Shown: positions 9,485 to 59,706, counted from the stretch's first letter. The stretch is 64,000 bases of DNA from Selaginella moellendorffii (GCF_000143415.4 NW_003314274.1:2276623-2340622), one strand, 5' to 3'. Program-made: numbers and translations. The notes: a model not told the origin generated them from the letters alone.

Positions 9485-11483
9485 TCAAGGATTTCCTAGC
9501 AGACGCTCAACAGCTGCATGTACATTGCCATTGGTTGCCGACAAGGCGCGGATGTTTTCTTGCGTGTCATAGAAACCCATGTCTTGAAGTTGCGATAACT
9601 GCGTCGCATACAGTTCCTCCGGGGGTAGAGCGTTCACTGCCAACACAAGAATCAAAGAAAAACACGATGTACAGCACTGGAAAAACAGTAAAATCAAAGT
9701 ACAAACCTTCGGGAGTCGCACCAAAATTGCTTCCAAGGCCGCCAAACATTCCTAGCAACGAGTTTAAATCGACATTGCCAGCGGCTCCTCCCAAGCCTCC
9801 TTGGCCCAAGCCTTGGTCCCTAAGAGAAGGAAAATGGTGTAAGTAAACCATAGAGTTTTCAAGAGTGACAACTTACTGCCCTGGCTGCTGTCGACCAAGG
9901 TGGCCTAGCAAACTCTGCTGGAGCGCAAGCATTTGCTGTGACCACAGCGTGAGGGAGAAGAAAGTTAACAATAGAAAAGGAGAAAAGGGAAAGGAAAACC
10001 TGTAAGCTCTCCGGACTGGTCATCTGCTGGAGAAACTCTGGGTTTTGCATCATTTCTCTGAACTGGGGGTTGGCATTCAGTATATTCCGGAGCTGCGGAT
10101 GCATGTTAAGGACCTGCAAGGATCACGAAAGCCATGACTGCTTTTCAATCATCAATCCGCAAACACACAGACCTGCTGAACGTACTGGGGGTTGGAAAGA
10201 ACTGACTGCATTGCCTGTAGCATTCCCGGGTTTTGCAACATCTGCTCGATCCCACCCAGTCCTCCAAGCCCGCCCAGCGCGCCCAAGCCTCCAGCGTTAC
10301 CATCACCCATGCCTCCGAGAAATCCCAAAGGCGGAAGCGTACCGAGTTGTTGTCCTGGGGTGGTGGTCGTCTCTCTCGCTGTACAAGACCAAAGGAAGTC
10401 AATGGAAAGCTCGAAAGAGAAGGAACCAAGTACCCGCGGGATTCCAAGGATTTGGAAGAGGAGCGGTGTTGGGAAGCACGGTAGCTCCCGTCCCCGCCGC
10501 TGGTGTTTGGTTCGGATCGCCAGTCCCGGCCGCTGGCGCCGTGGTAGCCGCTGGAGCTCTTCCCATCAAAGCGGCAAAAGGATTGGCCTGAGCGTCGGCT
10601 CCCTCGGCCCCGGTGCCACCCATGGTGGCGGCATTGAGCAGCGGCTCCTGGACGGTCTCATACATCCTCCGCAGCATGTTGAACCCCTCGGGCGAGGCCT
10701 CGATGTTGCTCATGGCCCGGTCGGTGTTCCTCATCATCTCCCTCATGAGCTCCGGGTTCCTGGCGGCGTCGAGCGTCTGGCGGAGAGTGGCGGGATCGTT
10801 GAGGATGTGCGCCAGGTCGGGGTTGCGGTCGATGATCTCGCGCATCTGCGGGTTGTTCATGATGAGCGTCCGCATCAGCTCCGGGTTGCTCATCAGGCTC
10901 TGGATGGCGGGCATGTTCATCATCTCGCGCATGAGGTTCGGGTTTTGCATCAGCTGCTGCTGGACCTGCTGGAACTCGGGCAGCGTCGTGGCGGTGCCCA
11001 GCGGCGCCGCGGCCCCGCCGAAGAATCCACCGTGCATGTTGGCCCCAATCCCGCCGGGAGGAGCTGCTGCCGGGGGAGCCGCTGCTGGGGATGGGGACGC
11101 TGGCGATGGCGCGGCCGGTGCGCCGCCGGGAGGCGGGGCGCCGCGGACGAGGTGGACTGTGTGATCGTTTTGTAGATCTGGAAGAATTTCGCGAGGGGAG
11201 AAGGGAGGAGTAAATACCCTAGCCAGAGAATCCCAGAGAGGAAAATTTCTTGCGGCTTACCGTAGCTGTCGAGGGAATTCTCATCCTTGAGCACGCGTCC
11301 CTTGTAGATTAGGCGCTGCTGATCGGCCGGGACCTCGGAGCGCTCGACGAGGAGGGATTTCAATCCGCGGACTGTGCTCTTGAGATCCACCGTGACCGAG
11401 AACTTGGTGCCGTTGGAGCAGCGAATGTGAACCGTGGCCGCCGCGCTGGGAGCTGCCGTCGTCGAGGCCTCCTCCGCGCTCAT
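9485..11483 (-). CDS. DSK2: Ubiquilin/DSK2 ubiquitin receptor (UBL-STI1-UBA), spliced
   Basis: UBL ([13 protein letters not shown]...HTVHLVRG), STI1 repeats ([34 protein letters not shown]), UBA ([28 protein letters not shown]...[10 protein letters not shown]). Confidence 0.95.
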
Positions 11484-11568
11484 TGCCCTATCGACGATCT
11501 AAAAACCCTAAATTGGCGAGAAAAAAGGAAAAGTCTACAAGGATTGGAAAAACTTTTTAGGGCGTGGA

Positions 11569-12706
11569 TTACGGGCAGTGGATATCCGCCGTCGATTGGG
11601 CATCATTCCATAGATCACCCATGTAGAAGTGGAGGATCTTTTCTACGATCCACTCGTAGTCCGTCTCGTCGCCGATGGATTTGAGTCCTTGTCTCACGAT
11701 CTCGTCCGTGACCCACCCGTTTTTCCTGTCAATCTCGAGCAGGAATTCCAGGACTTTGGGATGGTGCGAGTAATCTGGATGCCTAGAGCACGGAAAAACG
11801 GTCAAAACCTTTCCTTGGACAGAGGAAACTTACCCGCACAAAGTGAGAAAGTGGTGAGGTTTGTACTGTTGGTTCCACGAGAGCGATCGTTCGATCGATC
11901 CAGATGAGTGTTAGAACCAAGGAAAGCACTCTTAGTTTGCTTACCAATGCCTGGTACTGAGTTATATTGTTGGAAGCAAGCACCCAGAAGTCCGGAGGAA
12001 GCGAAAGGATCGCATCGTTGTGATGGTAGTGAAGCTTGAACGATTCCTTGCTTGTTTTGAATAGCTGCCTGGCCAAATCGGTGAGCTTGGCTTCTTTCAC
12101 GGACACCTCCGACCCCTGCCAAGCTGAGGCTATTTACTCAGTCCTCCGAGAGCCAAAAAGAGAATAAAAAAACGAAGAAAGAGTCTACCTTTGGATTCGG
12201 AGCCACGGATCCTCCAAAAGCAGCAGCAATCGCTTGATGCCCAAAGCTGATGCCGCAGGTCTTTACCTTGTTCTTGTCCAGCCATTGAATTTCCTGTTCC
12301 AAAGAAAGAAAGAAAAAGAAGGATTGGCTCTTTCATCGACGTGAAAGCAAGCTTGGAAACCTGAAGAAGCCGTCTGATCCACGGCTTTGGCTCGTACACG
12401 CCGCTGAGAGAGCCCGAGATGAGAACCCCATCGAAGTTTTGGAATCGATCAGGATATTGGCGCTCCGTGACATCGAAGCCTGCATGGATCTGATTAGAGA
12501 ACACGAATTTCTCCGGCATTTGTTCCTACTCAACTGGTAAGCGTGATCGATGAATGCGGGATAAAGCGCGCCGCAACGTGATCGAATGCCGCCTGGAGGA
12601 GCGCGAGATAGGATCGGCACGATTCCGAAGCTGTGCTGGGCAGATGCTGCGCCAGATGCTCGCATTCGTAGAGCGCAATCCGGAGTGCTCGGCGTCGCGA
12701 CCACAT
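11569..12706 (-). CDS. Class I glutamine amidotransferase-like / gamma-glutamyl peptidase-like protein, 6 exons, atypical active site
   Basis: Manual splicing from ATG 12706: RIALYECEH..., SFDVTERQYPDRFQNFDGVLISGSLSGVYEPKPWI, KTCGISFGHQAIAAAFGGSVAPNPKG, LHYHHNDAILSLPP, YKPHHFLTLCGHPDY; all GT-AG introns. Confidence 0.85.
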
Positions 12707-12959
12707 CTAATACCCTAAATAAAACAAAAGAAAACCCTAAAAACAGGATGCCGCCAATGCCAATGCTGATGCTTTGCCATGACCAAAGGATTTGAGCTCG
12801 CGTATATGGTTATCTGATCTGCTAATACTCTCATTAGACTGGTCTTCTTCTCCAAAAGACCACCCTGCCAAGGATGCTCTTAGCTGCTGCTGTTTCCATT
12901 ATGTGAGCCAATTCTTCCACATATATAAGCCTCTTTAGGGAACTGAAGAGGGCACGTCA

Positions 12960-13300
12960 TTTGTTTCAGTCCAAGTACCTGAATCTAGATCATACGAGAG
13001 ACTACTTACCCATGGCCAGCTTGACCACGGAAGTAGACACAAATATCGAGTCTATGAGTAATGTGATCACCTCACCAGACTCCACAGAAATTTCCTCAAT
13101 TCTGAACTTACACTTCCGTTCCACATTGAACCACACCATGTAGAGCTTTCCCCTCCAATTACTAACAAGGCAGACCGACTCGCCCTTCTTGACATTCAGA
13201 CAGAGATTTGTATATGCAACAGAGTCGCTTTGCAACATCAAACTGGACAGCATAAGCCGAACACTTCCTATGACCATGGGCCATGTTTCACAGCACACCG
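12960..13300 (-). pseudogene. Remnant of an F-box-family gene, paralogous to 44867-45614
   Basis: FNVERKCKFRIEEISVESGEVI vs LNVELKCKFVIEEISVGTGEMI; near-identical atgatctagat(t/g)caggtacttggactgaaacaaat in both. Confidence 0.65.
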
Positions 13301-16300
13301 TTATAGTTTCTTATTAAACGCATAGCATCGTGGTAGTTTTAATTTATATGTCTTATGCGTTTGATGAAATCTATGTCATTAAATTTTGACAAGTTTTCTA
13401 GCATGAAGGAATAAAAAAATTAAAAAAGACCATATCACATATTATTGTGATAATTTTCCTAAAGTCAATACTTTTTACACTATCTCTTATTAAACCACGA
13501 ATAATAAACTTTTCCGTTTGATTTAGGTGGTAGTGAATAGATCTAGAATATGCTTGAATATTCTAGGATATTCTATTATCTAAAAATTGTTATTCATTTA
13601 GAATAATCTTGTATTTATAATTTATAAACTTTCCTAAACACTTTAGTATATACTTGTTTATTCTACTATCTAATGGTTCTACCATAAGGGCATTGATCTG
13701 GGGAAACCACAGATTGACCTTAATAATGGTTTTGAGTTCTTGAGCCAGAATGCATGGACGCTCATGACTGGAATGGTTGATATGCAATATAATTAATCTT
13801 GCTTTATAAAATACAAACATCTTTATTATTATTAAAAAATATTAAATATATCATTAAGCACGCCAAAAATTGAATAAATTATTAAAATTAGACCTTTGTT
13901 TGTATATTTAGATAGTTATTTTCATTTGAAAAACGTATTAGGTAAATCATAAAATCACAACATAATGATTTCTTGCATTGCCTCAACTTTAAAATATATT
14001 GCAAAACTATAATTAAATAAAGGCTTGCTACAGGGTTTGTGAAAATTCTAGCAACTTCATATGATTTTAGTACATTATATCTTTTTGTGTTTTCACTTTT
14101 CATATATGTCATTTCTTGTTGATCTCTCATTTCATGTCATAAAGTATCTATATATATATATATATATACATATAAATTTCTAAGCACACAAATAAAAATC
14201 ACTTAATATTCTTAGGTAATCATGATTTACATACAATATTGCTACAAAATTAAGATGTAGTAAAGAGATTTTTAATCAACAATTCATATGAATGAAAAAC
14301 TTTCTTAACAACCCTTATTTTGGCTATAAATAAATATTTATAATATAAACTACTTCATTATAAAGGTCTTTGTAAACAACATGAAAATGGCATAACTACA
14401 TAAAACTTTAGATATTGTGTTTTTAAATATAATTGTTTATCCTAGATTTTAATTTAGCGTATTCCTTATCCCATAACAATATAATATCTGTTTGGGGATG
14501 ATATTGTTCTAAACTTTGAAAAATATTACACTTTGAATTATCAGGAAGCCATCCCTAAGCTAGAAAATAGTTAAAATTAATTAACAAATTTTAAATATTT
14601 ATTTGTAAAACTTACTAAACTTTGAAGTTGTTTTTGTTTGGGCCTCAAAATGATGTTATGGTTATAAATTAGTGAAACATTGATCAAAATTATAAAAATT
14701 TAGTTTTTGATAAAAAATTAAAATTTTGCAACTAGTTTTATTCTAAAAATAAATGTGAATATAAAACAATTGTATAAAACTTTATTAGGTAATTTTAAAG
14801 TCACTTTAAATACATTTACATACATACCTTAAATGGTGGCAAATAGATATAGAATGTAAACTTTTAGTGATGGATTATTCAAGTTTAAAGTTTATAAAAG
14901 TTGTAAGGTATTCTTTCCAAAAGATTTTATTCAAGTAACTTATAAAAGAAACTAATATAACAATTTACATATGAATTCATCCATGAAATTTTAACTTTTA
15001 TATTTGTTGTAAGCCCAAAAAATTTATATCATTTGATATAGACAAACAATTTAAATTATATGCAGTGAGTGAGTTTAATTAAGAAAACACTGATTTTTTT
15101 GCTTGCTCACTGTTGCATATGCATGCATCATAATGTTCTAAGAGCCAATAGTTATATATACTAATTAATAATTTTTTTACACTAGTAAAGTTTTATATAA
15201 TAATATTTTTCATTTTCATTCATTTTAGTAAGTTTAACCAAGATATTTATGAATATTATATTCCAAAATAATTAATAAAAGTTATTGTGCATTTACTTGC
15301 ATAACAATCAAAATTTATCGACATTATGGTTTGGTTGTCATATACAATAAAAAAATAGCTTGCAATATCAATAATAACTAATTTATTATTATAATAAATA
15401 AAATAACTTTTTAATAAAATATAGTACATAAAGTAATAAAAAATTGTCTTTTAGTAGGGATGAATGTTAGCTTATAAGTACTTTATTCCCAATATAATAG
15501 CCAATTTATATTGAGCCAGAAAAAAAAATTATATTAGTTGTTTTTAAAATGATTTATAACCTTTTTTTTAATCATGAGACTTTATTAACTTTACTATAAA
15601 TTTCTCTTTAATGTTTTTTCCACTTTTACTCTACTTTTTAAAAGTTCTTTAACATCTTTAAACTTTTCTATATTTTAGTATTAGGAAAAAATTTGTGTAT
15701 AAGAAAGCACTTTTTGCATATATCTTTCAAACTTCATAACTCTTAATTAACATTAAAGAGAGTTATAAGCATTTGGAAATACTAAATAAAAATTTCCATG
15801 TATGCCTTTATATTCCCAAAACTATGCTATTTTAAAAAAAACAAAAGAGCATTTAAAATTTAAAATGTAAACTATTCTAACAGAGGTGTGATATCTACAA
15901 ATGTTTGAGTAATTTATGCAGCAACTCTTAATTTTCTTTGGTTTTTATATACCTTTTACTGACAATGGGCAAAGTGTATTATTGAAATCATGAAAAACTA
16001 GCTGCTAATGGATTTAGAAGAGGATTTAAAAGTTTAGAAAGGCCTTAAATGCTACCATTCATGTGTTGCTTTCAAGCTACATGGCTATATCAAGCGTACT
16101 AGCAAGGAATTATCCTTGAACATCAACATAAATCCAAGTTTATCTTTCTAAGCTACCACATGTTCACCAACAATGGTGATACAGCATGTAGTCATTGGAC
16201 AAACATGTCTCTTTCCCCTCAAAGGAAGTCCCGGCACTTGTCCAAGGTTTTCCAGGCATGCATAGGAACAGTGGAAGGTGACTCTCATTCATGGCTCTTC

Positions 16301-21245: not shown

Positions 21246-23299
21246 ATCACCAAGAACATACCATAAGACTATACATGATCTTTGGGATTTATAGATAATG
21301 GATAGTAAAGGTTTCCCTTTTAAGGATAGTGGGGTTTCCTTTTTTCTGCCTAGCCACATCACTAAATATTCTTTATATATTCTAAAAAAGAGAATATACT
21401 TGTATATACCTTATAAGATTTAAATATATTAATAACAAAGTAGCTTTTTGCATTTGATCACAAAAATGTATGATTTGTGTATCTAGTTATTTGAAAGGCA
21501 TGCTATAGATCAAGATCACCAATCACATAACTATTGTCTCAGCAAAAGTAGAAATGCCCACACTTTGACTTGATTATAAATAATAACATGAAGAAAAAGA
21601 AGTTGGCCCCAGCCAACTCGCTACTTTGCTCAACCTCTTAACCATCTCTTTAGAGCAACTAAATAGCCAAGCCTCTAAATAACTCCACTCCTATTGCCTA
21701 GATTAGCAATCTCTTATTATGTAGCCACCTCAACAAATCCGCTAGGCAAAAATACTTGCCTCTAGCTAAATCATAAAGTCCTAGATTGTGATGCTCACTA
21801 ATCCATAAGACCATTTTAGTTTGAGGCAGTTTGAATTCTTATTTATCAGCTTGGTCCTCAAACCATTTGGTCTTATTTTTTTTGTTTCGAAAGTGCTTAT
21901 TTACTCAAATGCCCCTTGGCACAAGAAAAAAATGATGTAGGATAGCTTTTTTCAACCAAAACTAAAAAAGCAACATTTGAGACTAAATAGTTTTATTGTA
22001 AATTCTTGAATTTAGACTTCCCAAGAGGTTACCCAGCATAGTACTATACAAACCCAAGGTTATTTAACCCAAGTATCCTATAATCTTTAATTGATTGGAA
22101 AAGAAGGTGCATTTTTTTTAAAAAACCCTTTCCTTTTATATTTGAATCATTATGGATCGTTTTTCAAATTATTCTCTTTTGTTGTTTATGATTTATCATG
22201 CTTCCCTGCAAGTTTACATCCTCATGAATGGAAGCTAAGAGCCACATCTCTTCTTAAAACTCCACTCTCTTAACACCCTATCCTTTAAGTCAAGCTTAGT
22301 CGGAGGCAAACTAAACTTACCAAATATCAATATCAATATATGATGTGATTCCCTTAACTAACCAATAGAGTCAGACATAAGACTTCTCTAATACCAAATA
22401 AAAGCTTTTAAATTTCAAACTTCCTGAGAGGTCATTTAGTTTAGTACTATATAAATCTAATGATGCTTTGATTGAAAAAGGGGGTGCACTTTTTGTTCAT
22501 GGGTTCTTTCTTTTTATATTTGAGCCTTTATGAATCATTTTTTAAGTCATTCTTTTTAATTATTTACACTTAACTTATGGTGGCTTTTTTTTTTTTTTTT
22601 TAATATGCACTTCTTAAAAAGTATTTGGTGGCCAAATGTGTGATGTTGCCCACCCTATTGTTGTGGCCCTTTGACAAAAAAAGGATTGTGATTGAATTGA
22701 TTAGCTAATACAAGTTATTTATGCAACCAATGCTTAGCAATTCAATTAGGGGTTTCTCATACACATTAGTAGCAGCAGGAGGATACCACTTTAATCTAAT
22801 GTAGAGCCACCACTTTGCAAAGGGATTTACATTTAGATGCTTAAGCCTAAATGTGTTGAGAACCAAATCAACTTTTCTAGTGACATCTAATATTTATTAT
22901 AGGGGTGGTGTGTGACATGATTAATAGTGTTAATTACATAGCTCTCATCTATAGCATCCACATTCTCATGTGGCTGGGTAAAAAGATGAAAAAGCATAGA
23001 AGGTGGTCCTCTTAACTAGATTGATCTTATAAAAAAAGAGATGATAAACTTGAAAAATTTCTGATTTTTATAATTGTATAGATTTTAAATAAATTCATAG
23101 ATTTAAATTTTAAAATTATTAAATAATAATTTATATTTTATAAGAATAAACTAGAATATTCAGTGATGACTACCAAGCACCAAAAACCCTTAAAGTGGAC
23201 ACACTCATGGATAGCTGACCATTATAGATGACCTATATTGGAGCAAAAAAAGAGTTTTAAACAAATTAAATCTACTTTATCATAAAGATTTAAAATGAC

Positions 23300-24345
23300 T
23301 GGTCTTGGAGAGATCTTATATTGTCATAGTTTACAATTTGTAAGAGATAGAGGAAAAAAATTAATATTTCTCCATCAATAAAAATTTACAATGAAATTAA
23401 TTGATTATTATTTTGTTGGAAGCTTGAAATATATAGTTCATACACCAGCAAGTACATCCCTCAACCATATACCATGTGCTCAAATGAGGCTTTGGGATGA
23501 GGGGGAGAGAAAAAAAATGGAAAGTAAGCCATTTAGGAATATGGTGAGAAACTTCTTGTACTTATCGACAATATCAAGTCCTAATTTTGCAATAGTTGTA
23601 TTATTTGTAAGCCAATACATTCAGTTTGTAACTATAAATATTTTCAAATACCTTCATGAAACTCCAATATAGAGAATAAAATACTCAGGGAGTATAAGCT
23701 CATAGGGAACATTACTAACTGGATTTGCTAATGCAAATTTACATACGAGACAAAGACATTAAAAAATCTATTTTAGAATGGTGTTTCAGAATGTATGGAA
23801 GAATGTATGAAAGAGTTATAAGTTACATGTGAAACAGAGTATATAGCTATAGCATCTGCTACAAAAGAGACAATTTGGACTAAGCTTTTAGTGGACTTAG
23901 TTGTGGAACAAGGGATACCCACCCAAATTTACAATGATAATACCTTTGCCATTATATTGGCTCAAATCTAGTGCTTCATAGCACCTTTCTACCTTATTCA
24001 AATCATCCATAGACAGGTAATTTTAGATTACATACCTGCTAATGATATGGTTATAGATATTTTAACATAGTGTTTTAAGAAAAAGATCTCTAAATTCAGA
24101 GCAATCTTAAAAGTTTTACTTAAGGGGGAGTATTACAAGTAAGATTGTTATGTTAGCCAGTTGGAGGTGAGTAGTGAGCAACTTGGAGAATGAGTAAGAA
24201 TGGGCAGCTAGAGAACCAAATGACACTCAACAAAGAATCACTAGGGGATATAATTATAAATTAGAGAGGGAATCAGAGTGGACCTTACTTCAATAGAAGT
24301 TTGGTAGTTTTCTTCACATTCATTCATTCATATACTATTTGCACA
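23300..24345 (+). mobile_element. Ty1/Copia RT-RNase H remnant, PPT and probable 3' LTR
   Basis: LGEILYC..QFVRDRGKKLIFLHQ; KPFRNMVRNFLYLSTISSPN; TCETEYIAIASATKETIW; PTQIYNDN; YIPANDMVIDILT; PPT AAGGGGGAG 24122-24130. LTR end approximate. Confidence 0.8.
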
Positions 24346-26126
24346 GTCTGCCCCTTAAAAACCATTAGCGTTTTAGGAGTATAATTAAATGATTTTTTTT
24401 TCTAAGCTACTTAGCAGCATTCAAATTTCTTGAAAGGGTACAATGATTCATCAAATCACTATTAGAACTGCATAGACATCATTTCATTTGAGTTGGCTAC
24501 TGAAGCATTATAAGACTTTATAAATAATCTATGAATGAATGAATGAAGAGATCTTTCACAATATGAAGAAAAATTGTGGCAATTGTGAACTGAGTTAAGT
24601 ATTTTCTTAAGGCTAGGGTTAGAAAAGTGATCTTAGAAATATTTGGCACAATCATAATAAAAAATTTAATTAAGTAGGGATAGATCAATTGGGAGAGTGT
24701 TAGATTGAAGTGTGTTTGATCCATGCTCACGTAAAAAATACAAAATTGGTGTTATTCTATTATGTTTAATGATGAAATATTATTTTTTACATTTTATTTG
24801 AAAATTTAATATTTTTTAAAAACAATTGCATAAAAACCCCTCAACGTTTTTATATTTACAAATATGCACATTCGAAGTTTTAAAATTTCAACTTTTTGAA
24901 TTTTGAATAAAAAAAGTTTTAGATAATGCAAAATATCAATAAGAAATTCATAATAAGTTTAAAAACTTTAAATTAATGTCATGAATAGGCATCAATTATG
25001 ACCATATCAACCACCCCACAATGAAATTATTTTATATCTTTCTTAAGAATTTAGTATAAATACAATTCCTTTCTAGATAGAAATCTATGGCACCAGCATA
25101 CCATATATTTGCAAATGTTCAACATCAATAGGATAAAACACACCCATATATATTTTGCAATACAAATTAAACAAATAATACATGTTAGCATAAGCTTCTT
25201 CCTCCATAAGATTTCATTAGTTATATATGCATAAGGCAATCTATTTTTTTAAAATTCAAAGCATAACTAATACCATGCTAATATGTTCACCACATGAGTG
25301 TAGTCTTATGTCTATATTTTGAATATACTAGGATTCAAGGGCATAATAATATAGTAACGAGCTTGAGAAATCACATCATAAAAAAGTTTTTCCGCATTGT
25401 TCACTAACTTTAGTTACACCACTTTTGCCATATGCTTCATCACATTTTAATTGGTGCTGAAAAAATCAATTGATAACTTTGCATTGAATGTGCTCAACAT
25501 TTTGAAATGTTGGAAGGACTAAATTCAAGTATCATTATTTTCAACATTAATTGTGCCAAATGCAAGAGGGAATAATAAGTGTTCAACATTCAAACAAGCA
25601 TGCATCTTATGTATTTCGACTTTAAATGTGTATCAAGATTGCTCAAAAGTTTACAATGCACAGAACTAATGAAATTAACACCATATAGGATAAATAGGCT
25701 TTTAAAAGTAAAACTTTCATGGTTATCTAAATTGCTTGAAAAGAAAATTTCCATATAAGTAAACTGTATCATGTCTTGAATTTCTCTTCTCTTTTCCTCT
25801 CTGAGCAACAAAATAAAAAACATCATACTTTTGATGCATTTCAGTTATCATGCTTTTTGGACATTATTTAATTCATCCCTCACTCATTGTTTGAAATTAT
25901 TTATGATCCAATGCTACCATCTTGATCAAGCAAAACATATTTTTGTCAACAAGAGAAGGATGAAGTTTCTATAGACACTTTGGATTGAATTGTGCATCAT
26001 TTTCACTCTACAATCAATTCAAAATACCTAATAATAACTACTGCCATTTTTAGCTCGTTCCGGTATGAAGTTTAAATGATTTCCACCAAATTTGGGGGGA
26101 TTTTAAATAGCAATAACAACCAGTGT

Positions 26127-29720: not shown

Positions 29721-30591
29721 ATGAGCTATCCGGCGCCATTCGTTCGCGACGCTACCGCCGAGCACAGGCACACGGTCATCCTTCTCCACGGGCGTGGAAG
29801 CAGTGGCAGCGAGCTCGCCGAGGAGCTGGAGGAGACGCTGGGCTCGGGCAGCGCCAACCTCTTCCAGCGCTTCCCGGGCGTGCGCTGGGTGTTCCCGAGC
29901 GCGCGCCCCCGCTGGTCGAGCGTCTTCGTGGTTTGACGCGCCATCGCTGTGCGATATAGGCTATAAGCAGCACCTCCAGGTCGAGGGCCTGCGCCAGTCG
30001 GTCGACTTCCTGCTGCGCGTGATCGAGGAGGAGATCGATCGCGTCGGGAGCGCGAGCAAGGTGGTGCTGGGCGGGATCAGTCAGGGGCAAGCAACGGCCT
30101 TGCACGCGCTAGTCTGTGGGCGACACAGGCTGGGAGCGTTTGTGGGCGCCAGTGGATGGCTTCCCTTCGCTGACAAGATTGAAGAGGTTCTGGCCGATCA
30201 TGATCAAGGGGAGGACGCGGACCCGAGGCCGATCGCAATCAAGCGCGTGTCCGAGTTCTTGCGAGGCGAGCTCGGTCTAGAGGTTGAGGATTTGGGCGAT
30301 TCGTTTACGAGTTTGCGGGCCACGCCGGTGTTCTTGGGCCACGGTACGGATGACAACCTGATCGAGTTGGATCTGGGAAAGCAGGCCCGTGATCTGCTGA
30401 CCAGGATGGGGATCGAGTTGGTTCTGGGAAAGCAGGCCCGTGACATCCTGACCGGGATGTGGATGAGCGTTGCGGGGAAGGAGTAGGAGGGCGCGGATCA
30501 AGACGGCCATTGGATCAACGAGCCGGAGCAAGTTGATGACACCGTAGCGTCCTTGAGTGATGCGCTCGAGGACATTGTCAAACAAGACTAG
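29721..30591 (+). pseudogene. Fungal-type phospholipase/carboxylesterase (acyl-protein thioesterase-like alpha/beta hydrolase), intronless, disrupted
   Basis: HTVILLHGRGS, RWVFPSA, WFD, GGISQG (Ser), TPVFLGHGTDD (Asp), KE*EGADQDGHWINEPEQVDD (His); frameshift near 29930, 51-bp in-frame duplication 30361-30462, TAG at 30484-30486. Confidence 0.82.
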
Positions 30592-49400: not shown

Positions 49401-52400
49401 GTTTGTGCTTGTGATACAATATAATGTGAATTCAATAATCCTTATTACAAGTTTAAAACATACATGTTCTTAAACTATCCTTTTTAACTTGAGCCCTTTA
49501 TCTCATTATTTATTATCAATGCTGCTGAAAAAGCACGAGACAGACGTCCCTATGCAGAGATCCCAAGCCCAAATAATAATAATAATAATAATAACAGCTA
49601 TTTCAAGTCACAAGGACCCACAAAAGGCATCAAACCATCTTATCTACTGTTGGTGTGGAGTGCAGGTTTAAGGATAGCAAGCACCTCATTGTGGAAGTTT
49701 GTGGTGGCAGTGAGGTACTCACAAAGTGGCTGATGTTGCCATTGCTAAAGGAAGAGAGGGAGGGGCAGCTCAAAATTGAGGAGTAGTTCTTTGTCCTGTT
49801 GTTGTCTGTAAAGCATTTAAGAAGCAGGAATGGGACAAAGTCCAATGGCAAGTGCCTCTTCTAGTGATATCAACGTTGTGTTTCCTGGACAAGGATCTCC
49901 TCAATGTCATGCCTCCACATCATGTCTTGATCATTTCATACATTAATTAATGCCACCTGTAGCATTTGTAGTGTGGAACGTCCATCTTGTACTGCCGAGG
50001 ATGACATGAAGGTTCATTATATCAAGGACTAGCAGCTTATGTAAATCCCTTCGTCTCATGCTTCTTACCAGAAGACCATGTAAACAGCATATGAATGAGA
50101 AGTTGGCATTTCTAAGTTCATGCTCAAGTCCACATAAATCAAGATGGAGCATAAACTGCTTATCAATGTCCATTATAAGATTACAAAAGCAGGTGAAATT
50201 CCTGAATTTTTATTATTATTAGTACATGTTAAGATCATTAGTGCCCAGGCAATTGCACATCTTGCACATTGCATATAAATAGGCATGCTGTCTTTCGTCG
50301 AACAGGAGCACGACATTGCAATCACACAAATATGAGATATCAAAATAAAAAGACTATATCTTGCCCTTAAATAGTTGCCAGAGTGGAACGCTCTTGTGAA
50401 CGTTTTATGTTGCGATCTTTTAAGCTTCCTTCGCTGAACCACAATTGAATCAAATTTCCAAGTCAGAAAAGAGCAGCATTGTGCAGTACCTGATGAACAA
50501 AAGTTGAAGTTTTCTTCCTTGGCACTCTAAGCTTTTGCATGCTTCGAGAACTTTGTTGTACTCTTGGCCAGAACGGGTGGCTAATGCCTGGCTATCAAAA
50601 TGAAAAAGCAGAATAAAAATCAGTGGAAGAATTTTGGAGGTAATGTGAATAACCTGTGAACAAAAAGTGGCTCAGTTTTTGTGTTGTTTCAACTCTATAA
50701 TCACTATCACATTTCTTATCCTCTACCAAAATCCAGCCTATCACCCTACAAAGAATATGTGTCCACGATGACCATAAGAAAAAATAGAGAGAAGAAACCA
50801 CTTTCATAAGCAATGAACTTGAAATAAGATTTTCTTCTTACTTTGGATGGAGCTCTTGCTTCGTCTGTGAGAGACTAAGGAGCAATCTTGCTAGAACCAG
50901 TCGTCATATTATGTACAGCACCTCTGGTGGTTGTTATATCATGACAACAAATATGAATATTTTTAGTTAGAAAAACAAGAAATAAAGTACCTTAATTTAA
51001 TCCATTAAGACTCTAGTGAAGATGAGCTAGTGCACTTGTCTCGTGTGGGAGGCAAGGTAACACACTTTAACCTTATATTACATTAACACTCTTTTTCAAC
51101 TATTTTCAAGATTTAGTGATTATTAGTTATTTTGCAACTAGTAATTACTCATAGACTTTGTTGAGGATTATTTAACATTTGCTTCACTCAATGAAGGTTC
51201 TTTCTCTCTCTGTCTCTCTCTCTGTCTCTCTCTCTCTGTGTGAGAGATTATTTTTAAATCTAATCATCCACAATTGATCAATTCAGGCCTTGATCTGTTC
51301 AGCTCCTCTAGCCACAATGGTATATGTACGGGTAGCTATAATTTCTGCAAGCTCGCAGTGGACACAGCTTTTTTTCTTTATAATTGTGCGGAATAACTGG
51401 TTAGCCAATGTTCATCAACACACACTTCATGTAGTTATGGTTAGTTTGAAGGTCGATGGATATGTTCTAGACCAGCTGCCTTCAATCAAGCCGTCCAACA
51501 TAGGAACTTGAGTAGTTGCAATGGGTCTTTGCATCTGCATTTACTTAGATCTCAAGTGTACACATAGTGGTTATCATTGGATCATCTCTTGAGCAGTTGA
51601 AATGATCGTCGCATGGACAAGATGGTTGCAGACATCAAATCCCTTTGCCTGCTGCTGCTGCTGGTTGTTTGTGTGTTTCCCCATCTCAAAGTCAATGATC
51701 ACAAGAGAAAAGAATAGATTGCATGCAAAGCACTAGTTATTTTGTGGCAAGCTAAGTAACACTCTGGAAGCAGCACTAATAGCTGAATGATGGATCTTAT
51801 AGAGATCCAAACAGATCTCATGAGCTGTACTGGATTAAATCATGAGAAATACAAGGAAAGAGAGAACAGGAAGAAGAAGAAAGAAAGAGGAAGAGAGAAA
51901 GAACTATGATAAAATGTGGTATGCTTCCCCCGGTATGTTTCCTTCCACCTTGTCTAGTTGTACAAAGCTTTGCCTCCACAGATCACTCCTAACAGATCTC
52001 TTGGTCCCTAATGTGATTGATACAAAGTTCGAGACATTGCCATGGCTTAAAGAAGGACAACATGCAAATTCTTGTGACAAGTCACATACACAATACCTAG
52101 CAAGAAGTCACAAAAAATCATGCAAAAGCAGCTCGCTGCAATTCCAAAAGTGTGTTCCAGATTCCTCAGTGACATTTTTTAAAGCTTTATACATTAGTAG
52201 ACCTTAAATCTTCATTCTCAGGCAAGAAAATATATCTTTTGCAGATCCCCTATCAACCTCGTAAAATGATCACCTACAATCCAGAAAAAGAGTTTGTTCA
52301 AGCAATTTGGCTGCTGTGTCCCCTCTGATCAATGGTATTGGACAGCCAGCTTGTGATGATACATTGTTGGGTATTGGCATCTGTGAGACTTTGATCACCA

Positions 52401-54542
52401 TAACCGTAACAAAGGTCTTGAACACCCATGAAGAGAGAAGTTTAAAAGTAGGGCAATCTCATACCTTGTATGACAAGAGGATGCTGTAGAGAACAAGTGT
52501 TAAAAACACTTAAAATACCAAATCAATCACCATGCCACTTATTAAAACATTTCTGAACTTTAAATAGTATTTATTAATATTGAAATGGGATTTTGGCAGG
52601 TTTATATTGAAATTTAAAAAAATTCTCTTTATGAAAATAATTCTTTACTTAAAGCATTATAATAATTAATGTTTTTTACTATCTCAAGGTCTTATAAAAT
52701 GTTGTAGTGTGCTTTGTGTTTTCAAGTTCAAGTTCAAGTGGTAATATTCTTTGGCTTTCAAGTCTGAGTCATAATGTATAATAGTATTCAAAATCTAGAT
52801 CATATAATATTTGAATATGTCAAGAGAAAAAAATATTGTACATGAGGAAGGAACACTAGGCTTAGAATGAAAAATAAAAAATGGCTGGAAAGAGCAAAAA
52901 GGTAAAAAGAGGATCAAATAGTAGATTAAAGGATTGATATTTACCCCTTGAAATCTCTAACTCATCTCCAAAGCTACTTTCTTAATAATCAAATTCCTCG
53001 TCACAATTTAGAATCAATTTAAATTATAAATATCATCTTCCTATAAACTTAATCCTCAAACATTTTCCAAGAATTAGATTGCATCATTTATAGCTTACCA
53101 GTTGATGTTATAATCATGCTCTACATCAATAGAAAATTGTAAAATATTGAGAATAGGACATCAAAAGAAAGAACAGATCTAAGCACAATAATAACTAGAA
53201 TTCTAGATCTTGCAAAAGACCAATACAAATCTAAATCTAAAAGAGAATGAAGAAATAAAAATAAAAAGTATAATCCCATATTGGTGGAATTGAGGGGCAT
53301 TACAATTTATCTTTGAAATGCAAAGTTTTTTAGTAGTGCTTTGCTTTAGTGTTCAAGTGCTCAAGATATAAGAATAAATATATTAATTGGGGTTTATACC
53401 CTTTTTTATATACAAGAATGGATGGATTAGATTTAGTCCTAAATAAACAGTCTATATGTTATAGTACCATAATTAGTGTATTACCTAGCCAAGATAATAC
53501 ATATATATTTGCAAAAGTTTCATCAAGGAAAGTTTGAGTCAATCGAGAAATATACAACTTGATTTAACAAAAATTATAAGCATTGTAAAGACTTAGTATC
53601 TAAAGATTAAATCAAAATTGTTTGCCAACTATTTATTTCAAACACAATTACTACAATTTTATCTCTTCTATACACACTTCAATAACATCCATATATTAGT
53701 CACAATGTCAGTGCTTGAATATCTAGAACAACTAAAACATGACTCTCTCTCTTTCCCTCTCTCCCCCTTTCCCTTTCTCTCTCTATAAATGTAAAGGAAT
53801 ATCCTATAATATAATTTCCTTAAAAACTTTATGTAATGCTCATTAATGCAAGTGTATCTATGGCAAAAGCTTTGAACTAGTCTTCAGTGGCTAGAAATAT
53901 TATCTAATTCCTATTGAGATTACTCTAATTCCTTACCCAAAAGCTATGTGTACTCTCCAAAAACTATATTATAAGCATCAAGGAATTGGAAAGTAAAGGC
54001 TAAATTCTAGATGATTTTCTTGATCTTAGTTGCATGAGAAGTGAGAGAAATATAAAACTCTAATTATTGATTTTGACCTTATATTTGATAGTAAATTAAC
54101 CACAAAATGGAATTTAGCCCTTGGATACATGTGCCAAGGACAATAGAATAAGACCGAGTTTTAAGGCTTTGTGTTACTAAATGAAGGGATGGAAAGCAAG
54201 TGAAGGGTTAGGAGTATAAAGTAGCATTCAATATCCCAATGCTAAAATTAGCATATAAAATGGAGTTTAATAAAGTTTGACACTATTTTAGCATACTAAT
54301 GGCTTATCATAAATTATACCACTTATAACTCCCCCCCCCCTCTTCCCAACACACAGGAAACCCACCAAGACCCTTCTATATATAGTTAAATCATCTACTT
54401 TTATAAACTATATTTATGGAACTATGTTAATTTATTATCTATAGATGGTCATATACTATATATAACATAAATTTTCTTTTTATATTATTATGCAGAAATT
54501 GTTCTTGAAATCTATCTTATACAGTATATATAATTTGAATCT

Positions 54543-54544
<2 letters not shown>

Positions 54545-54591
<47 letters not shown>
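54545..54591. repeat. (TA)n microsatellite
   Basis: Perfect TA run. Confidence 0.95.
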
Positions 54592-54596
<5 letters not shown>

Positions 54597-56784
54597 TGTA
54601 TTGAAAGAAAATGATGTGTACCTATCTAAAGCTCATGTGCACCAAATGCTTTAGAGGCTATTGTATGAAAAAAGGCATTAGGCTTCATATCCAATGAATC
54701 TATCTATATTGGCCTCTAATTTTTTCAAGCCCAATCAATTTGCATTCTTAATTGCTAAGGGGACACCACTCATTTCAATGGAGCTGTGGTATTAAAGTGT
54801 TAATAAATGAGCAAAAACTTCTTTGAGGAGCTAAAGTTGAGTTGCAAGTGTTGATCATCAGAAGGCTTAGGACAAGAAAATAATCAATGCATTATAACTC
54901 ACCTTTAGCAAAGCTAACATCATTGACTAGTGATCTTATTATGTGCTTTTTGCATGTCTCATAGATTTTCTTACTCATCTATGAGTAAAGTGAGAGCTGA
55001 AAGTATAGAAATTCTAAATCAAGCCTAAAGGAGCAGAGATTATTCTTATTGAACCTTTGTGAGAAAAGAGTTTCTGAAATGACCACACTTCTTGATTTTA
55101 TATAAGTCATTGTAGTAAAACTTTTATAGCTCAATAAAAAATAAGAGAGACAAGTCTATTTGCTAAAGCATGGATAGTAAGTGCAAAACTACCCCCCTTA
55201 TATGGAGAAGAATAAATAAAAAGAATGTATAAAGCCAAAAATAACTAAAGACATAGTCAAAGGTGATTATATAAATTGGGAATGAGGAATCAAATAAGAA
55301 TTCAAGGGTTTGCTATTTACAAATATGGTACCATAAAGAAACTAAAGTATATAAGTATTCATATTAGACCACATGCAAGTAAAAAACTTGTGAAGGGAAA
55401 AACCTTAAGAAGTGAAGGGGTGGAATCCCCTCAATGTTTCAAAGGCAAATTTGAGTATGTTGAGTATATCTAAGGCATTTTTTGTGGGGAGTCACACTAA
55501 GGATTTTATATAGGGAATCACGCTAAATATTTTGTATGAGGTGTCATGCTAAAAATTTATATGATACCATAGATGCATATATGGAGGTTGGGTTAGAGTC
55601 CCAACTATTTAATACTTAGAGGGCACTAAAGCGTAGTTATGATTTGGAATAAGAGGATATTCATTTTTCGGTGGTTATAAACTTTTGACAAGGAGGTTGG
55701 TGGGAGATGCTTTGGAGTTGTAATCCACAGTTAGTATGTTTAATATGAAAACTTGACATATCTAACTTGAATACTTTAGTACAAATGGCACAAATGATGT
55801 GGTGAATGGGATAAGGATATTCAATCTCCATTGCTATAGGCCAAATAGGCTAGCTTGGGCATACTACCAAGTGTGGGGGTACCCCTGAATCAACAACTCA
55901 AAGATTGAGTAAACTTAATATTTATTAGTAAATATATTGAAGTTTTTATTTGGGATCACTAAATGATCTTATGGTTGGTCAAGGACAAGCTCTTTACTGT
56001 GTTTAAGAAAAAGATTTTTAATTCAAATTAATGATTTAAACAAATGGTATGGTGTAACTAAGTTAAGGTAATTGAGTGGGAAAGACATTTAAGATGAAAT
56101 GGTCAGATACAATATAATGATATTGTGAATTCAAGAAATAGTCTCTAAAAAAAGGACTTATAAAGGTTAAGAGATTAAGCAATAAATAGAGCCCACTAAT
56201 GAAAAAAGTGAATACCCTATAGACTTAGAAAAGTAAAGTCTTTGTTGTGGAATAACAAAATACCCTAAATATGAAGGTGGTGATTCTGGTGTAAATAACC
56301 AAAGGATAGGAGTAAAAGACTAATAGTTATGAATAGCCTAATAAACTGTTGAAACAAATCTAAATGATAAATTATATGAGAAACTATTAAAGGGTGGGTG
56401 TTGATGGATGTATGGGAAAAGTCATAGAGTTCCAAGGGAAGGAAAGCCTTAATGCTCCAAGTTGGTGAAAAGTGAAAGTTTTAAAAGATGGAGTGGCAAT
56501 GTATAGAGCCATGAGCAACCCTAGTATAAATTATAGATCTAAAAAGTGATAATAACTAAGTAACCTAACAAATAAGTAAAAGTATAGGATTAAGAGATTC
56601 TAAGATAAATCCCAATTATGTGAAAGGGGGTAGATGCAATCAATTTTGGAAGATAGCTATGAGAACACCATAGGTGATAGAGTTGTATTATGGATATTCT
56701 AAAAGAGAAAACTCTATAGAAAGTTCTACCATATGATAAGTGGAACTTAGTGCCTAAGTTAGCATAGAATAAAAGAGAGAACAG

Positions 56785-56865
56785 ACATCCAAATAGAAAT
56801 TTACAAATTAGTATCATAAATAGCTATAAATCCTTCATTATTTACACACAAGACCCAAATATTTT
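56785..56865 (-). pseudogene. Fragment duplicating the 3' end of the lectin gene
   Basis: ccaaatagaaattt.caaattagtatcataaa.agctataaatccttcattatttacacacaa matches 57875-57938. Confidence 0.75.
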
Positions 56866-57856
56866 TCTAATGAGCAATTAGAAAATATTTTTCTAAATAT
56901 TTTGTGCTTGCAAGTATCCTAGTAAATATTTTATTCTTCAACTTACTCAACACATAATTTCATCCTTTACCAATAAGTTTATCAATTTAATTAAAGTTAT
57001 ACAAAAATAGTAATTTCAAATAAAACTTATTTGTATATCCTGACTTTTATATCACTAAGGTTACACATAAATTAGGATTGAATTGTGAGAATCAATGCAA
57101 TAATTGATAAAAGGTGCTAGGGCAAGATTGAGGATGACTGTACCATCTTAATTCACTTGTAATTGGGTATTTCTTTAGTAGGAATATTTTATAGAAAATC
57201 CATTACAAAGCAAAGAGATTTTGTAAGTTGTATAAGGTAAGTTCTAGATATAAATTTGAAAGCTATAAAAAAAAGACTTTCTTCTTTGTTTTCAACTGAT
57301 GGAGCTACAGGAGCTACTTTCTACTGATTAATAAAGCATGTAACTCTTAAATTTTGATAACTAAAGGTTCTAGTATGCTAATAGTCAAACGGACCTTGAT
57401 AAAAAAATGAAAGACAAAGAAGACGATTTAGTTTTTTGTTAATTTTTGCAAGTTTCTTAACTCCACTTCCTTTCATTCCACATAATCTGAAAAGTTTAAA
57501 TATTAGAATTTCTTACTAATGAAAATACTTAAGAAGTGACATATTCTCATTCTTCTTTCAATTTCAGAATTATCTAATTTAAAAACCATCTGTAAGGTAT
57601 GTTCCCTCATGGGTATCTATTCAATTTACCTGAGAGCATTATTACTGATGCAAATTACACAGCTATTATTGTGGGGTTACATAAAAATGTAAGCAATTTT
57701 TTCTTTTTTTTCTCATCCACAAGCCATCACCATGGTTGTAAATTATACTATGAATTCACACTAGCACAAAAATACCACACATGTGGATGGACTCTTACTA
57801 TATGAAGGAATTCATAATAGTATTTTAATGTGGGGGTTATTAAATAATATTTAAGT

Positions 57857-58741
57857 TTAATTAGTTTTAGACCTCCAAATAGAAATTTGTAAATTAGTAT
57901 CATAAACAGCTATAAATCCTTCATTATTTACACACAAAGAAAACGTGACCCAAATTTTTTTCCAATACAAATTATAGGACCATATAAGTTTAAAATATTT
58001 ATCATAAATTACTAAATTACCATCTTTTTGTAAGTGAAGAAAACATTTAATTCCTTTACCATTAGTTTTGGTATCCCAGATATTAATTTTTTTAAAATAA
58101 AGCACTAAGTTACAATCAAATTGCATAATCAAAATAAAAAACATATTAGGTGATTGCAAAAATTCTCCAGTATACAATTTTGAAAAATAAGAATAATGTG
58201 GTCCACTTTTAATACAAGTTTTATGAATGTCACAATCTGATATTAATTGATTTTGATGATAATTATAAAAAACTGGGACTATAGTACTAAATTCATTTAA
58301 TTCAAAATCTACAGTATATGATATTGAATATCGAGAAGATATATACTTTACAGAGCTATAAGTTATAAAATCATTTATAACATATGTATCTAATATATGA
58401 TTAAATTCACGTTGCAAAGCTGTTCCACTATTTAGATTATACAAAAAAGGAATAATACTACAAAGATAAATATAATATTTTCTATTTTCTTGTATATCAT
58501 AAGCTTCTATTAAAACTATTAAACTCTTTTTTTCTTCATATAACACTCTAGAAAATGAAAATCCCAAGAATATTTCTTTACGTTTTCCTACTTCTTGAAT
58601 AAGATTTTTTATGATAGGTATTATAACATTTTGTCTATATTCAATTGTTATACCTTCTTTTGGTCCTTCATAATATTTTATTATACATTCAATAGATTGC
58701 ATGATTAAAACTATTATAACAAATATTTGATTAAAAAACAT
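57857..58741 (-). CDS. Secreted protein with unknown N-terminal domain and C-terminal bulb-type (GNA-like) mannose-binding lectin domain, intronless
   Basis: Signal-peptide-like MFFNQIFVIIVLIMQSIEC; LYTGEFL, MQFDCNLVLY, IWDTKTNGKG, LQKDGNLVIY (QxDxNxVxY motifs), IWRS; 294 codons open despite very low GC. Confidence 0.8.
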   Translation of the reverse strand: MFFNQIFVIIVLIMQSIECIIKYYEGPKEGITIEYRQNVIIPIIKNLIQEVGKRKEIFLGFSFSRVLYEEKKSLIVLIEAYDIQENRKYYIYLCSIIPFLYNLNSGTALQREFNHILDTYVINDFITYSSVKYISSRYSISYTVDFELNEFSTIVPVFYNYHQNQLISDCDIHKTCIKSGPHYSYFSKLYTGEFLQSPNMFFILIMQFDCNLVLYFKKINIWDTKTNGKGIKCFLHLQKDGNLVIYDKYFKLIWSYNLYWKKIWVTFSLCVNNEGFIAVYDTNLQISIWRSKTN

Positions 58742-59183
58742 AGTTTAAGAAAGTTAATAAATTTAAGCTTCTAGAGTTTGGAAAACAATATAGCAAGAAT
58801 TGTTTTTAAATATTTTTTCTGTATACTGTTTCTTATTTTATTAAGTATTTTTTATTTTAAAATGTCTTTTAAGTAGAATGTTTGTTAGGAAGCTATGCTT
58901 AGACATATGGCAATATATGCCTACCTATATGCCTATATATATAGTTTGTATTTAAGAATAGTGTCTTAAATTATAGCAGATCGATATTCAATTGTGCCTT
59001 TGAAATTTGAGGTTATTAGCAACTCTTTTATTGCTATTTCAAAGGTTGCTCAGTGTGACACCATGTTTTTATTGAAAGGGGCTTGAAAGTCATCATGTGT
59101 GTGTCTAAAAAGCCTAAAATATCTATTTTGTTAAAATTATTTGATACATTTTGCATGAAAAGTTAGAATGAAAATATGAATAT

Positions 59184-59222
59184 GAGAGAGAGAGGGAGAG
59201 AGAGAGAATATGAATGTGTGTT

Positions 59223-59253
<31 letters not shown>
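59184..59253. repeat. Compound (GA)n/(GT)n microsatellite
   Basis: GA and GT runs seen directly. Confidence 0.85.
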
Positions 59254-59254
<1 letters not shown>

Positions 59255-59706
59255 TTCTCCTCACATCTATATAATGGTTATTACCCACCATTGTTGCAAG
59301 ATTTAGAGTTTGCCTTCTCTTAATAACATTGAAAATCAAGGTTACTATAAATAGTTTCTATAGCAAAAAAATTAAAACGAAATTGTCATAGCCAATTTAC
59401 CATGCCGGACATGCATGAGGAAGTAATGCCCTCATCATGGAATCCAGGTGTATACGCCCAACTCAATGGAACAGCAGGGTGCTTCACGTTGCTAAACAAA
59501 GATGTTTGAATTCATCTCCAATGTTTTGGGGTCAAATTGATAATTGTGAAAGAGGCCAAGGTCTTAGCGGTTATCACAAATGTCAAGGCTATGGGCAACA
59601 AAAAGAGGCACCAGTGCTTCCCATTTACCCTTTATTACTGAAAGCCATAAAAGTTAAAACGCTCGCCAAAAATTTTCGTAGCCCTAAAGTTCTATTTCTT
59701 CTCATC

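Follow-up and report, generated by a model that had tools for sequence, protein, structure and literature searches.

A class I GATase-fold protein of Selaginella moellendorffii with serine and aspartate at the catalytic cysteine and glutamate positions

Introduction

Class I amidotransferases and the C26 gamma-glutamyl peptidases (GGPs) are textbook cysteine enzymes whose engineered Cys-to-Ser mutants are dead, and plant GGPs have a role in glutathione turnover. A minus-strand gene of Selaginella moellendorffii, at positions 11569-12706 of the window (the whole 64-kb stretch of DNA analysed), encodes a protein of this fold with serine at the nucleophile position, and raises the question of whether it is a decayed copy, a non-catalytic binder or an enzyme of changed chemistry. 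An earlier note on the locus had proposed the last, reading two coordinated substitutions that would turn the Cys-His-Glu triad into Ser-His-Asp. The gene is already in public databases, labelled simply as hypothetical or as a GATase-domain protein, and the literature search found no paper describing a Ser variant of the class I amidotransferase/GGP fold; the sole related remark found concerns a moss GGP homologue without R206 (PMC9804317). The comparisons presented below indicate that the chemistry of the enzyme has probably been changed in a whole clade, not lost to decay.

Gene structure, expression and product

The RNA-contig-corrected gene model runs from ATG to TAA on the minus strand (11569-12706) and comprises six exons, with a CDS of 813 nt encoding 270 aa; the span is supported by the RNA contigs, by identity to the database protein P0024 and by a PF00117 match. 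Splice evidence came from contigs of four RNA-type runs (X5, X7, X9 and X16; four studies), which were compared with positions 11300-13000 of the window. The intervals skipped in these contigs (12480-12534, 12294-12360, 12116-12188, 11866-11944 and 11783-11833) correspond to introns of 51-79 nt, all bounded by GT..AG, so that the splice sites are intact and the transcripts are spliced as modelled. A 52-nt GTTGCG first intron (12526-12577) was also considered and is contradicted by the RNA contigs, which place the intron at 12480-12534.

Exon 1 (12535-12706; aa 1-57 and the first base of codon 58) encodes the N-terminal strand RIALYECE and the first helix, and the skipping of 12480-12534 beside it was found in all four runs. 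Exon 2 (12361-12479) holds FDGVLISGSLSGVY (RNA contigs, profile alignment), and exon 3 (12189-12293) the nucleophile elbow KTCGISFGHQ followed by NPK (RNA contigs, HMMER). Exon 4 (11945-12115) contains GSEVSV and LHYHHNDAILSLP, with His163 at 12023-12025 (RNA contigs, profile alignment), and exon 5 (11834-11865) encodes YKPHHFLTLCG, with Cys199 at 11836-11838 (RNA contigs). Exon 6 (11569-11782) encodes His201 (11779-11781), Asp203 (GAT; 11773-11775), His206, the C-terminal helices and the stop codon, as supported by RNA contigs, alignments and the structural model. Also on the minus strand, the 5' UTR is at least 11 nt long (minimum 12707-12717), the X7 contig reaching 12717, and a TAG stands in frame immediately 5' of the ATG at 12706. 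The approximate 3' UTR (11515-11568, from the X9 contig breaks) ends about 30 nt short of the start of the transcript of the next gene, a ubiquilin with its ATG at 11483.

In about 17 RNA-like runs, drawn from 10 studies, about half of the sampled words were present, which is approximately the share expected for a spliced mRNA. The Selaginella gene is thus expressed and is an ordinary nuclear gene, and no second copy of it was found by tblastn in the 64-kb window. The RNA contigs of the four runs differed at six positions, two synonymous and four non-synonymous, none of them at signature residues or active-site codons; six polymorphisms do not suffice to test for selection.

An alternative acceptor adds 8 nt to exon 4 (12116-12123, minus strand; exon start at 12123 versus 12115), the joint 12123|12189 being present in X5 and X16. 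Its use causes a frameshift and a premature stop, giving a 140-aa product that ends just past the elbow and has lost His201 and Asp203. The productive junction 12115|12189 was seen in X9, and the X7 contigs are broken at the same point; contigs are no measure of the ratio between the two splice forms. The 8-nt alternative acceptor may represent unproductive or regulated splicing.

The spliced 270-aa product is P0024 (100% identity over 270/270 residues), named by NCBI 'putative glutamine amidotransferase-like protein C13C5.04' of Selaginella moellendorffii. When exon 6 (70 aa) was used as a query against a representative library of 1.84 billion proteins, 14 proteins were retrieved, the full-length ones carrying GISFGHQ and GHPDYSH, and P0024 was reached by a word search seeded with the best full-length match, P0004 from Riccia sorocarpa. 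P0024 matched PF00117 over aa 66-209 with 54.3 bits against a cut-off of 22.8 (E = 1.8e-14), and matched no other Pfam domain, S51 included, at E <= 1. Isolated exon pieces matched weakly (exon 3 alone against PF00117, E = 1e-4), exon 6 alone had no useful match in Atlas or PDB sequences, and every NCBIfam match of P0024 was far under its cut-off. Its Atlas neighbours were generic GATase clusters only, among them one Ascomycota cluster (score 0.96). Overall, the Selaginella protein is a standalone, GGP-like protein without an N-terminal extension and is presumably cytosolic.

Residues and fold of the active site

The product carries FDGVLISGS (aa 73-81), KTCGISFGHQ (aa 108-117), HYHHNDAILSLP (aa 161-172) and LTLCGHPDY (aa 196-204). 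The motifs picked out in the earlier note, namely an elbow with an AGC serine codon, DGVLISGS, an HxDxIxxLP region and LTLCGHPDY spanning the last intron, are therefore all present on RNA-supported splicing, with the serine codon shifted by one base, from 12247-12249 to 12246-12248 (minus strand). The assignment of this codon to Ser113 is supported by the HMMER and profile alignments, the structural model and the residue table described below.

The cysteine of the G-x-C-x-G elbow is absent, the protein having GISFGHQ instead, and so is the His-x-Glu pair (HPE), His201 being kept and Asp203 standing for Glu (HPD). In phmmer and HMMER alignments, Ser113 was paired with the catalytic Cys of TrpG (GICLGHQ), GuaA and GGP1 (GICFGHQ), and the family profile placed Ser113, His201 and Asp203 on C100, H192 and E194 of GGP1. 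In the AlphaFold2 model (pLDDT 91.5, pTM 0.90), strand 109-112, Ser113 and helix 114-122 form the nucleophile elbow. The upstream Cys110, whose placement in the elbow would have undone the reading of a serine nucleophile, lies inside strand 109-112 in the model and is Val in mosses and Owenia, and HMMER, profile and model all put Ser113 in the elbow.

A Foldseek search with the model as query gave GGP1 as the best match (TM 0.80 on the query and 0.87 on the target; rmsd 2.4 A over about 255 columns). The top matches were all class I GATases, TM1158 and DnfC ranking after GGP1, and the profile match to GGP1 reached 109 bits (E = 2e-30).

Distribution and conservation of the Ser-type clade

Alignment A1 comprised 18 clade members, and further members were obtained from an A1 profile search and cluster look-up. 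Within A1, the Selaginella protein was 41-61% identical to the other 17 members, which extend from lycophytes and bryophytes to Owenia, and the invariant columns gathered in GSLSGVY, GISFGHQ, NPKGSEVSV, LHYHHND and GHPDYSH. The clade includes lycophytes (Selaginella, Diphasiastrum), liverworts (two species of Riccia, Marchantia polymorpha, M. paleacea, Calypogeia), mosses (Physcomitrium and Ceratodon, with two paralogues each, and Sphagnum) and streptophyte algae (Mesotaenium, Chlorokybus), as well as the annelid Owenia fusiformis and a group drawn from marine metagenomes and a Picozoa single-cell assembly. Its members include P0114 of Marchantia (NCBI tag MPTK1_5g15450) and UniProt A9SIN8 of Physcomitrium. 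No fern or seed-plant proteins were among the clade matches, although orthologues at 44% identity were recovered; close orthologues are apparently missing from ferns and seed plants in the database.

Residue identities were tabulated for 101 sequences of at least 195 aa, i.e. 50 clade sequences and 51 distant relatives from outside it, largely of the bacterial 'GMP synthase-like' kind. Ser113 was present, within GISFGHQ, in 49 of the 50 clade sequences, the exception being a Ceratodon paralogue with Gly, and CGHPDYSH was carried by nearly all of them. Tyr162, His163, His164 and Asp166 were invariant in the clade, and Asn165 was replaced by Gly in two sequences and by His in the Ceratodon paralogue. 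Cys199 occurred throughout, except for Ser in Chlorokybus and in the truncated transcript P0028, and Gly200-His201-Pro202 was invariant in all clade sequences complete there. After Pro202 followed Asp203, replaced by Glu in the Physcomitrium paralogue-2 cluster and in the Ceratodon paralogue, then Tyr204 (Phe in the Ceratodon paralogue), Ser205, His206 and Arg219. The distant relatives had Cys at position 113 in 51 of 51 sequences, Glu at 203 in 49 and Asp in two, and Gln at 199 in nearly all.

Besides Ser113 and Asp203, the clade-specific residues were Tyr162, His163, Cys199 and His206. Asp203 was the least strict of the set, since Ser occurs beside Glu in one Physcomitrium paralogue, and Asp in two relatives of Cys type. 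The proposal of two coordinated substitutions thus stands as regards conservation, Ser being kept from Chlorokybus to Selaginella and Asp almost always, and falls short as regards extent, since more residues were changed; on alignment evidence, the change of the site is a coordinated rebuilding wider than two substitutions.

Two paralogues depart from the pattern. P0025 of Ceratodon purpureus has Gly (GGC) at the nucleophile position and HPEF, with His and Glu kept, indicating that the scaffold can persist without a nucleophile. Physcomitrium paralogue 2 (P0132) has kept Ser and reverted Asp to Glu.

The histidines and cysteine gathered around the site could also be read as a metal- or redox-sensitive site made of His163, His164, Cys199, His201, Asp203 and His206, in a metal-dependent or redox-linked protein where Ser113 would be secondary. 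Such a site would be consistent with the fixation of these His and Cys residues only in the Ser clade, with the position of His163 next to residue 113 by homology to GGP1 (PMC12958103), and with the placement of Cys199 and His201 on one face of one strand (195-198) suggested by the model. Chlorokybus, however, has Ser for Cys199, no known metal-binding family was matched in Pfam or NCBIfam, and His164 and His201 are conserved in ordinary Cys-type members too, which makes a metal or redox site quite improbable.

Descent, introns and codon usage at the elbow

In a quick IQ-TREE phylogeny of 21 Ser-type and 34 Cys-type proteins, a sample that leaves aside GGPs and fungal proteins, a branch with SH-aLRT support of 99 and a length of 0.93 separated all Ser-type proteins from the rest. 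As this one long stem branch is common to the clade, the co-occurring substitutions would represent one evolutionary event, or two, and not many. Inside the Ser clade, internal branches were short and lycophytes, liverworts and mosses grouped as the species do, with Mesotaenium and Chlorokybus outside the land plants and Owenia beside the marine sequences. The five intron positions of the Selaginella gene (after aa 57/58, 97, 132, 189 and 199/200) were all common to Sphagnum and Ceratodon. From tree and gene structures together, the Ser clade is monophyletic, old and vertically inherited in streptophytes.

A recent fungal or bacterial transfer into Selaginella is ruled out by the introns common with mosses and by a tree that follows the species tree. 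The microbial or fungal affinity that the earlier note had seen in the N-terminus therefore does not extend to a transfer, and the closest solved structure is that of a plant protein, GGP1. What remains of it is a matter of distance: by profile bits, the bacterial Cys-type proteins (125-141) are no farther from the clade than GGP1 (109).

A reading of the gene as a degenerating GGP-type paralogue, as a pseudogene of that type or as a transferred copy adrift would account for the absent catalytic Cys and Glu, for the out-of-frame splice variant and for an N-terminus of fungal or microbial appearance. It conflicts with the intact frame and expression in runs of four studies, with the 41-61% identity to 17 clade members whose active-site motifs are invariant, and with a clade that follows the species tree and has five introns in common with mosses. 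Since splicing is as modelled, Ser occupies the elbow, and Ser is retained, with Asp in all but a few cases, in orthologues from Selaginella down to Chlorokybus, decay is excluded, and conservation, tree and common introns refute the pseudogene reading; this explanation as a whole is given next to no credence.

The Marchantia and Owenia genes were intronless. In Marchantia polymorpha, the orthologue (L005:1501-2295) has no introns versus five in Selaginella, Sphagnum and Ceratodon, which suggests that the liverwort line has lost every intron or carries a retrocopy. The Owenia fusiformis gene (L001:8001-8801) is a single-exon member of the Ser clade on a 62-Mb chromosome, flanked by amino-acid permease and PhyH-domain genes. 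No other named animal was found among the clade matches, and the Owenia gene may stem from an ancient transfer or from patchy retention. The marine contigs had eukaryote-type neighbours with PLAT/EF-hand, CUB and GH116 domains.

The elbow codon was AGC in Selaginella and Physcomitrium, AGT in Marchantia, Sphagnum and the alga-like contig P0023, TCA in Owenia and TCG in four marine contigs, the Ceratodon paralogue having GGC (Gly). No single-base route that stays Ser connects AGY with TCN, and each is one step from the Cys codons TGY. This leaves two histories: separate gains of Ser from Cys on two occasions, or a switch of codon class by way of Cys or Thr. Selection acting on a nucleophilic side chain, and not simply on small size, would be consistent with both codon routes, although this is suggestive only.

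Comparison with GGP1 and other relatives

GGP1 of Arabidopsis (MEROPS C26; PDB 9K7I/J/K/L) was the best solved-structure match both by profile and by fold. Like GGP1, the Selaginella protein is standalone, about 250-270 aa long and has the same motif order; it differs in that the identity is only 23-24% and that Ser and Asp replace C100 and E194. According to PMC12958103, C26 members keep the GGP1 triad C100, H192 and E194 without exception, a rule that the Selaginella protein breaks. The engineered C100S mutant of GGP1 is inactive (PMC12958103), so that Ser alone does not rescue catalysis on the GGP1 scaffold.

In GGP1, the Glu of the substrate is bound by S68, H70, Q104, Q156 and D157, with S68 in both the oxyanion hole and the S1 site (PMC12958103). 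These residues align with Ser81, Ser83, Gln117, Asn165 and Asp166, of which three are identical, and the two differing S1 positions act via main-chain atoms in GGP1. C154 of GGP1, which lines the S1' pocket and lies near enough to C100 for an inactivating disulfide (PMC12958103), is His163 in the clade, and Cys199 takes the place of the Gln that GGP1 has two positions ahead of its catalytic His. As C100 and C154 are replaced by Ser and His, any activity of the clade would be insensitive to oxidation of the GGP1 type.

R206 of GGP1 recognises the Gly of glutathione; it is not conserved in the moss GGP homologue, for which glutathione is probably not usable (PMC9804317). In the clade, the HMMER column of R206 contains Tyr or Ile, and a conserved Asp-Arg (Arg219) follows two residues on, four residues farther from the catalytic His than R206. 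Arg219 may be the equivalent of R206, an equivalence made uncertain by an insertion of 2-4 residues relative to GGP1 in the helix after HPD.

The nearest non-clade sequences were the bacterial standalone 'GMP synthase-like' GATases (for example NCBIfam PRK09065; Thermotoga TM1158, 1O1Y; P0068-P0073), with 125-141 bits by profile. They have the same domain, the same length and the GxxFGHQ and HP(E/D) motifs, and P0070 (Bacteroidota) even has LHYNHHD. Unlike the clade members, they all have Cys and Glu, with Gln two residues before the His, are only 25-36% identical and lie beyond the branch with SH-aLRT 99. For the fungal 'C13C5.04'-type GATase-like proteins, the likeness consists of the NCBI name and the Atlas Ascomycota cluster, and is general within PF00117; the one fungal-looking relative retrieved, P0077, has GICWGHQ and HPE and is Cys-type.

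Serine peptidases with a class I GATase-like fold, namely S51 dipeptidase E and cyanophycinase, show that an elbow of this type can support catalysis by Ser together with His and an acid. These enzymes have no detectable sequence relationship with the Selaginella protein, and their triad residues are placed differently along the sequence; S51 triads are discussed in PMC11078827.

Proposed chemistry of the Ser-type proteins

The gene model, expression, residue identities, fold, conservation, clade monophyly and vertical descent are established by these results; a working Ser113 nucleophile and a gamma-glutamyl or glutamine-like amide substrate are inferred. We slightly favour, among the possible functions, an active Ser113-His201-Asp203 hydrolase, possibly a transferase, on a gamma-glutamyl-type or amide substrate. 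The site has been rebuilt through Cys to Ser at the elbow and Glu to Asp after the catalytic His, with Tyr162-His163, Cys199 and His206 fixed around them. Ser113 would act as an oxygen nucleophile and form an O-acyl (gamma-glutamyl-type) enzyme intermediate. The amino-acid part of the substrate would be bound in an apparently retained S1 pocket (Ser81, Gln117, Asn165-Asp166), and a different leaving group would fit an S1' pocket reshaped by His163, Tyr162 and Cys199, the bond attacked being of gamma-glutamyl type or another amide or ester. The out-of-frame acceptor in the assembled transcript of two of the four runs was counted against an active enzyme, and so was the single stem branch that reduces the co-occurring substitutions to one or two events.

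The main rival holds that the fold and the glutamine/gamma-glutamyl pocket were kept for a metabolite or a partner protein, Ser113 being non-nucleophilic and the protein a sensor, regulator or scaffold. Such a pseudoenzyme or ligand binder would agree with the Cys-to-Ser mutant of GGP1, which loses activity yet folds (PMC12958103), and with the Gly at the nucleophile position of one moss paralogue. The apparently retained S1 residues, and the finding that the clade members retrieved carry no fused partner synthase domain, point the same way. Against it, His201 and an acidic residue accompany Ser invariantly in all sampled lineages (Chlorokybus, land plants, Owenia/marine). Aside from the Gly paralogue, position 113 is always Ser, never Ala or Thr, with both Ser codon classes in use, and the extra polar residues His163, Tyr162 and His206 fixed around the site resemble catalytic retuning. 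A pseudoenzyme is accordingly regarded as unlikely, albeit far from negligible.

If the favoured serine hydrolase or transferase were to apply to the whole clade, it would be the first natural Ser-nucleophile (Ser-His-Asp) lineage in PF00117, an oxidation-proof gamma-glutamyl/amide hydrolase or acyltransferase with a rebuilt S1' pocket. Its Ser would perhaps have been gained twice (AGY in streptophytes, TCN in Owenia and marine sequences). The lineage would have been kept by streptophyte algae, bryophytes and lycophytes, and would apparently be lacking in ferns and seed plants, which have Cys-type GGPs. This wider proposition is put forward tentatively, its combined parts being rather less assured than an active Selaginella enzyme. 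In either case, the clade is a natural experiment in which a thiol hydrolase scaffold either took up oxygen-nucleophile chemistry or became a conserved binder without catalysis. It bears on the sulfur and gamma-glutamyl metabolism of bryophytes and lycophytes, and Marchantia and Physcomitrium are easy systems for studying these genes.

Genomic neighbourhood

The neighbouring genes were ordinary plant genes, encoding a ubiquilin (about 85 nt downstream; so called by its ubiquitin and UBQLN1 domains), an F-box beta-propeller protein, a P450 and a nucleoside transporter. Only about 85 nt (11483-11569) separate the stop codon from the same-strand ubiquilin ATG, and RNA contigs were continuous over both genes in three runs, those of X9 breaking between 11488 and 11515. 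Telo-box-like AAACCCTAA motifs were found on both flanks of the gene, at 12720-12750 in the putative promoter and at 11500-11515 near the start of the next gene. Elsewhere in the window, positions 14001-16000, 22001-26000 and 52001-60000 were very AT-rich (GC 0.22-0.33) and alternated with gene-rich regions of GC about 0.5, and an ORF at 29794-30486 on the plus strand encoded an Abhydrolase_2 (phospholipase/carboxylesterase) domain.
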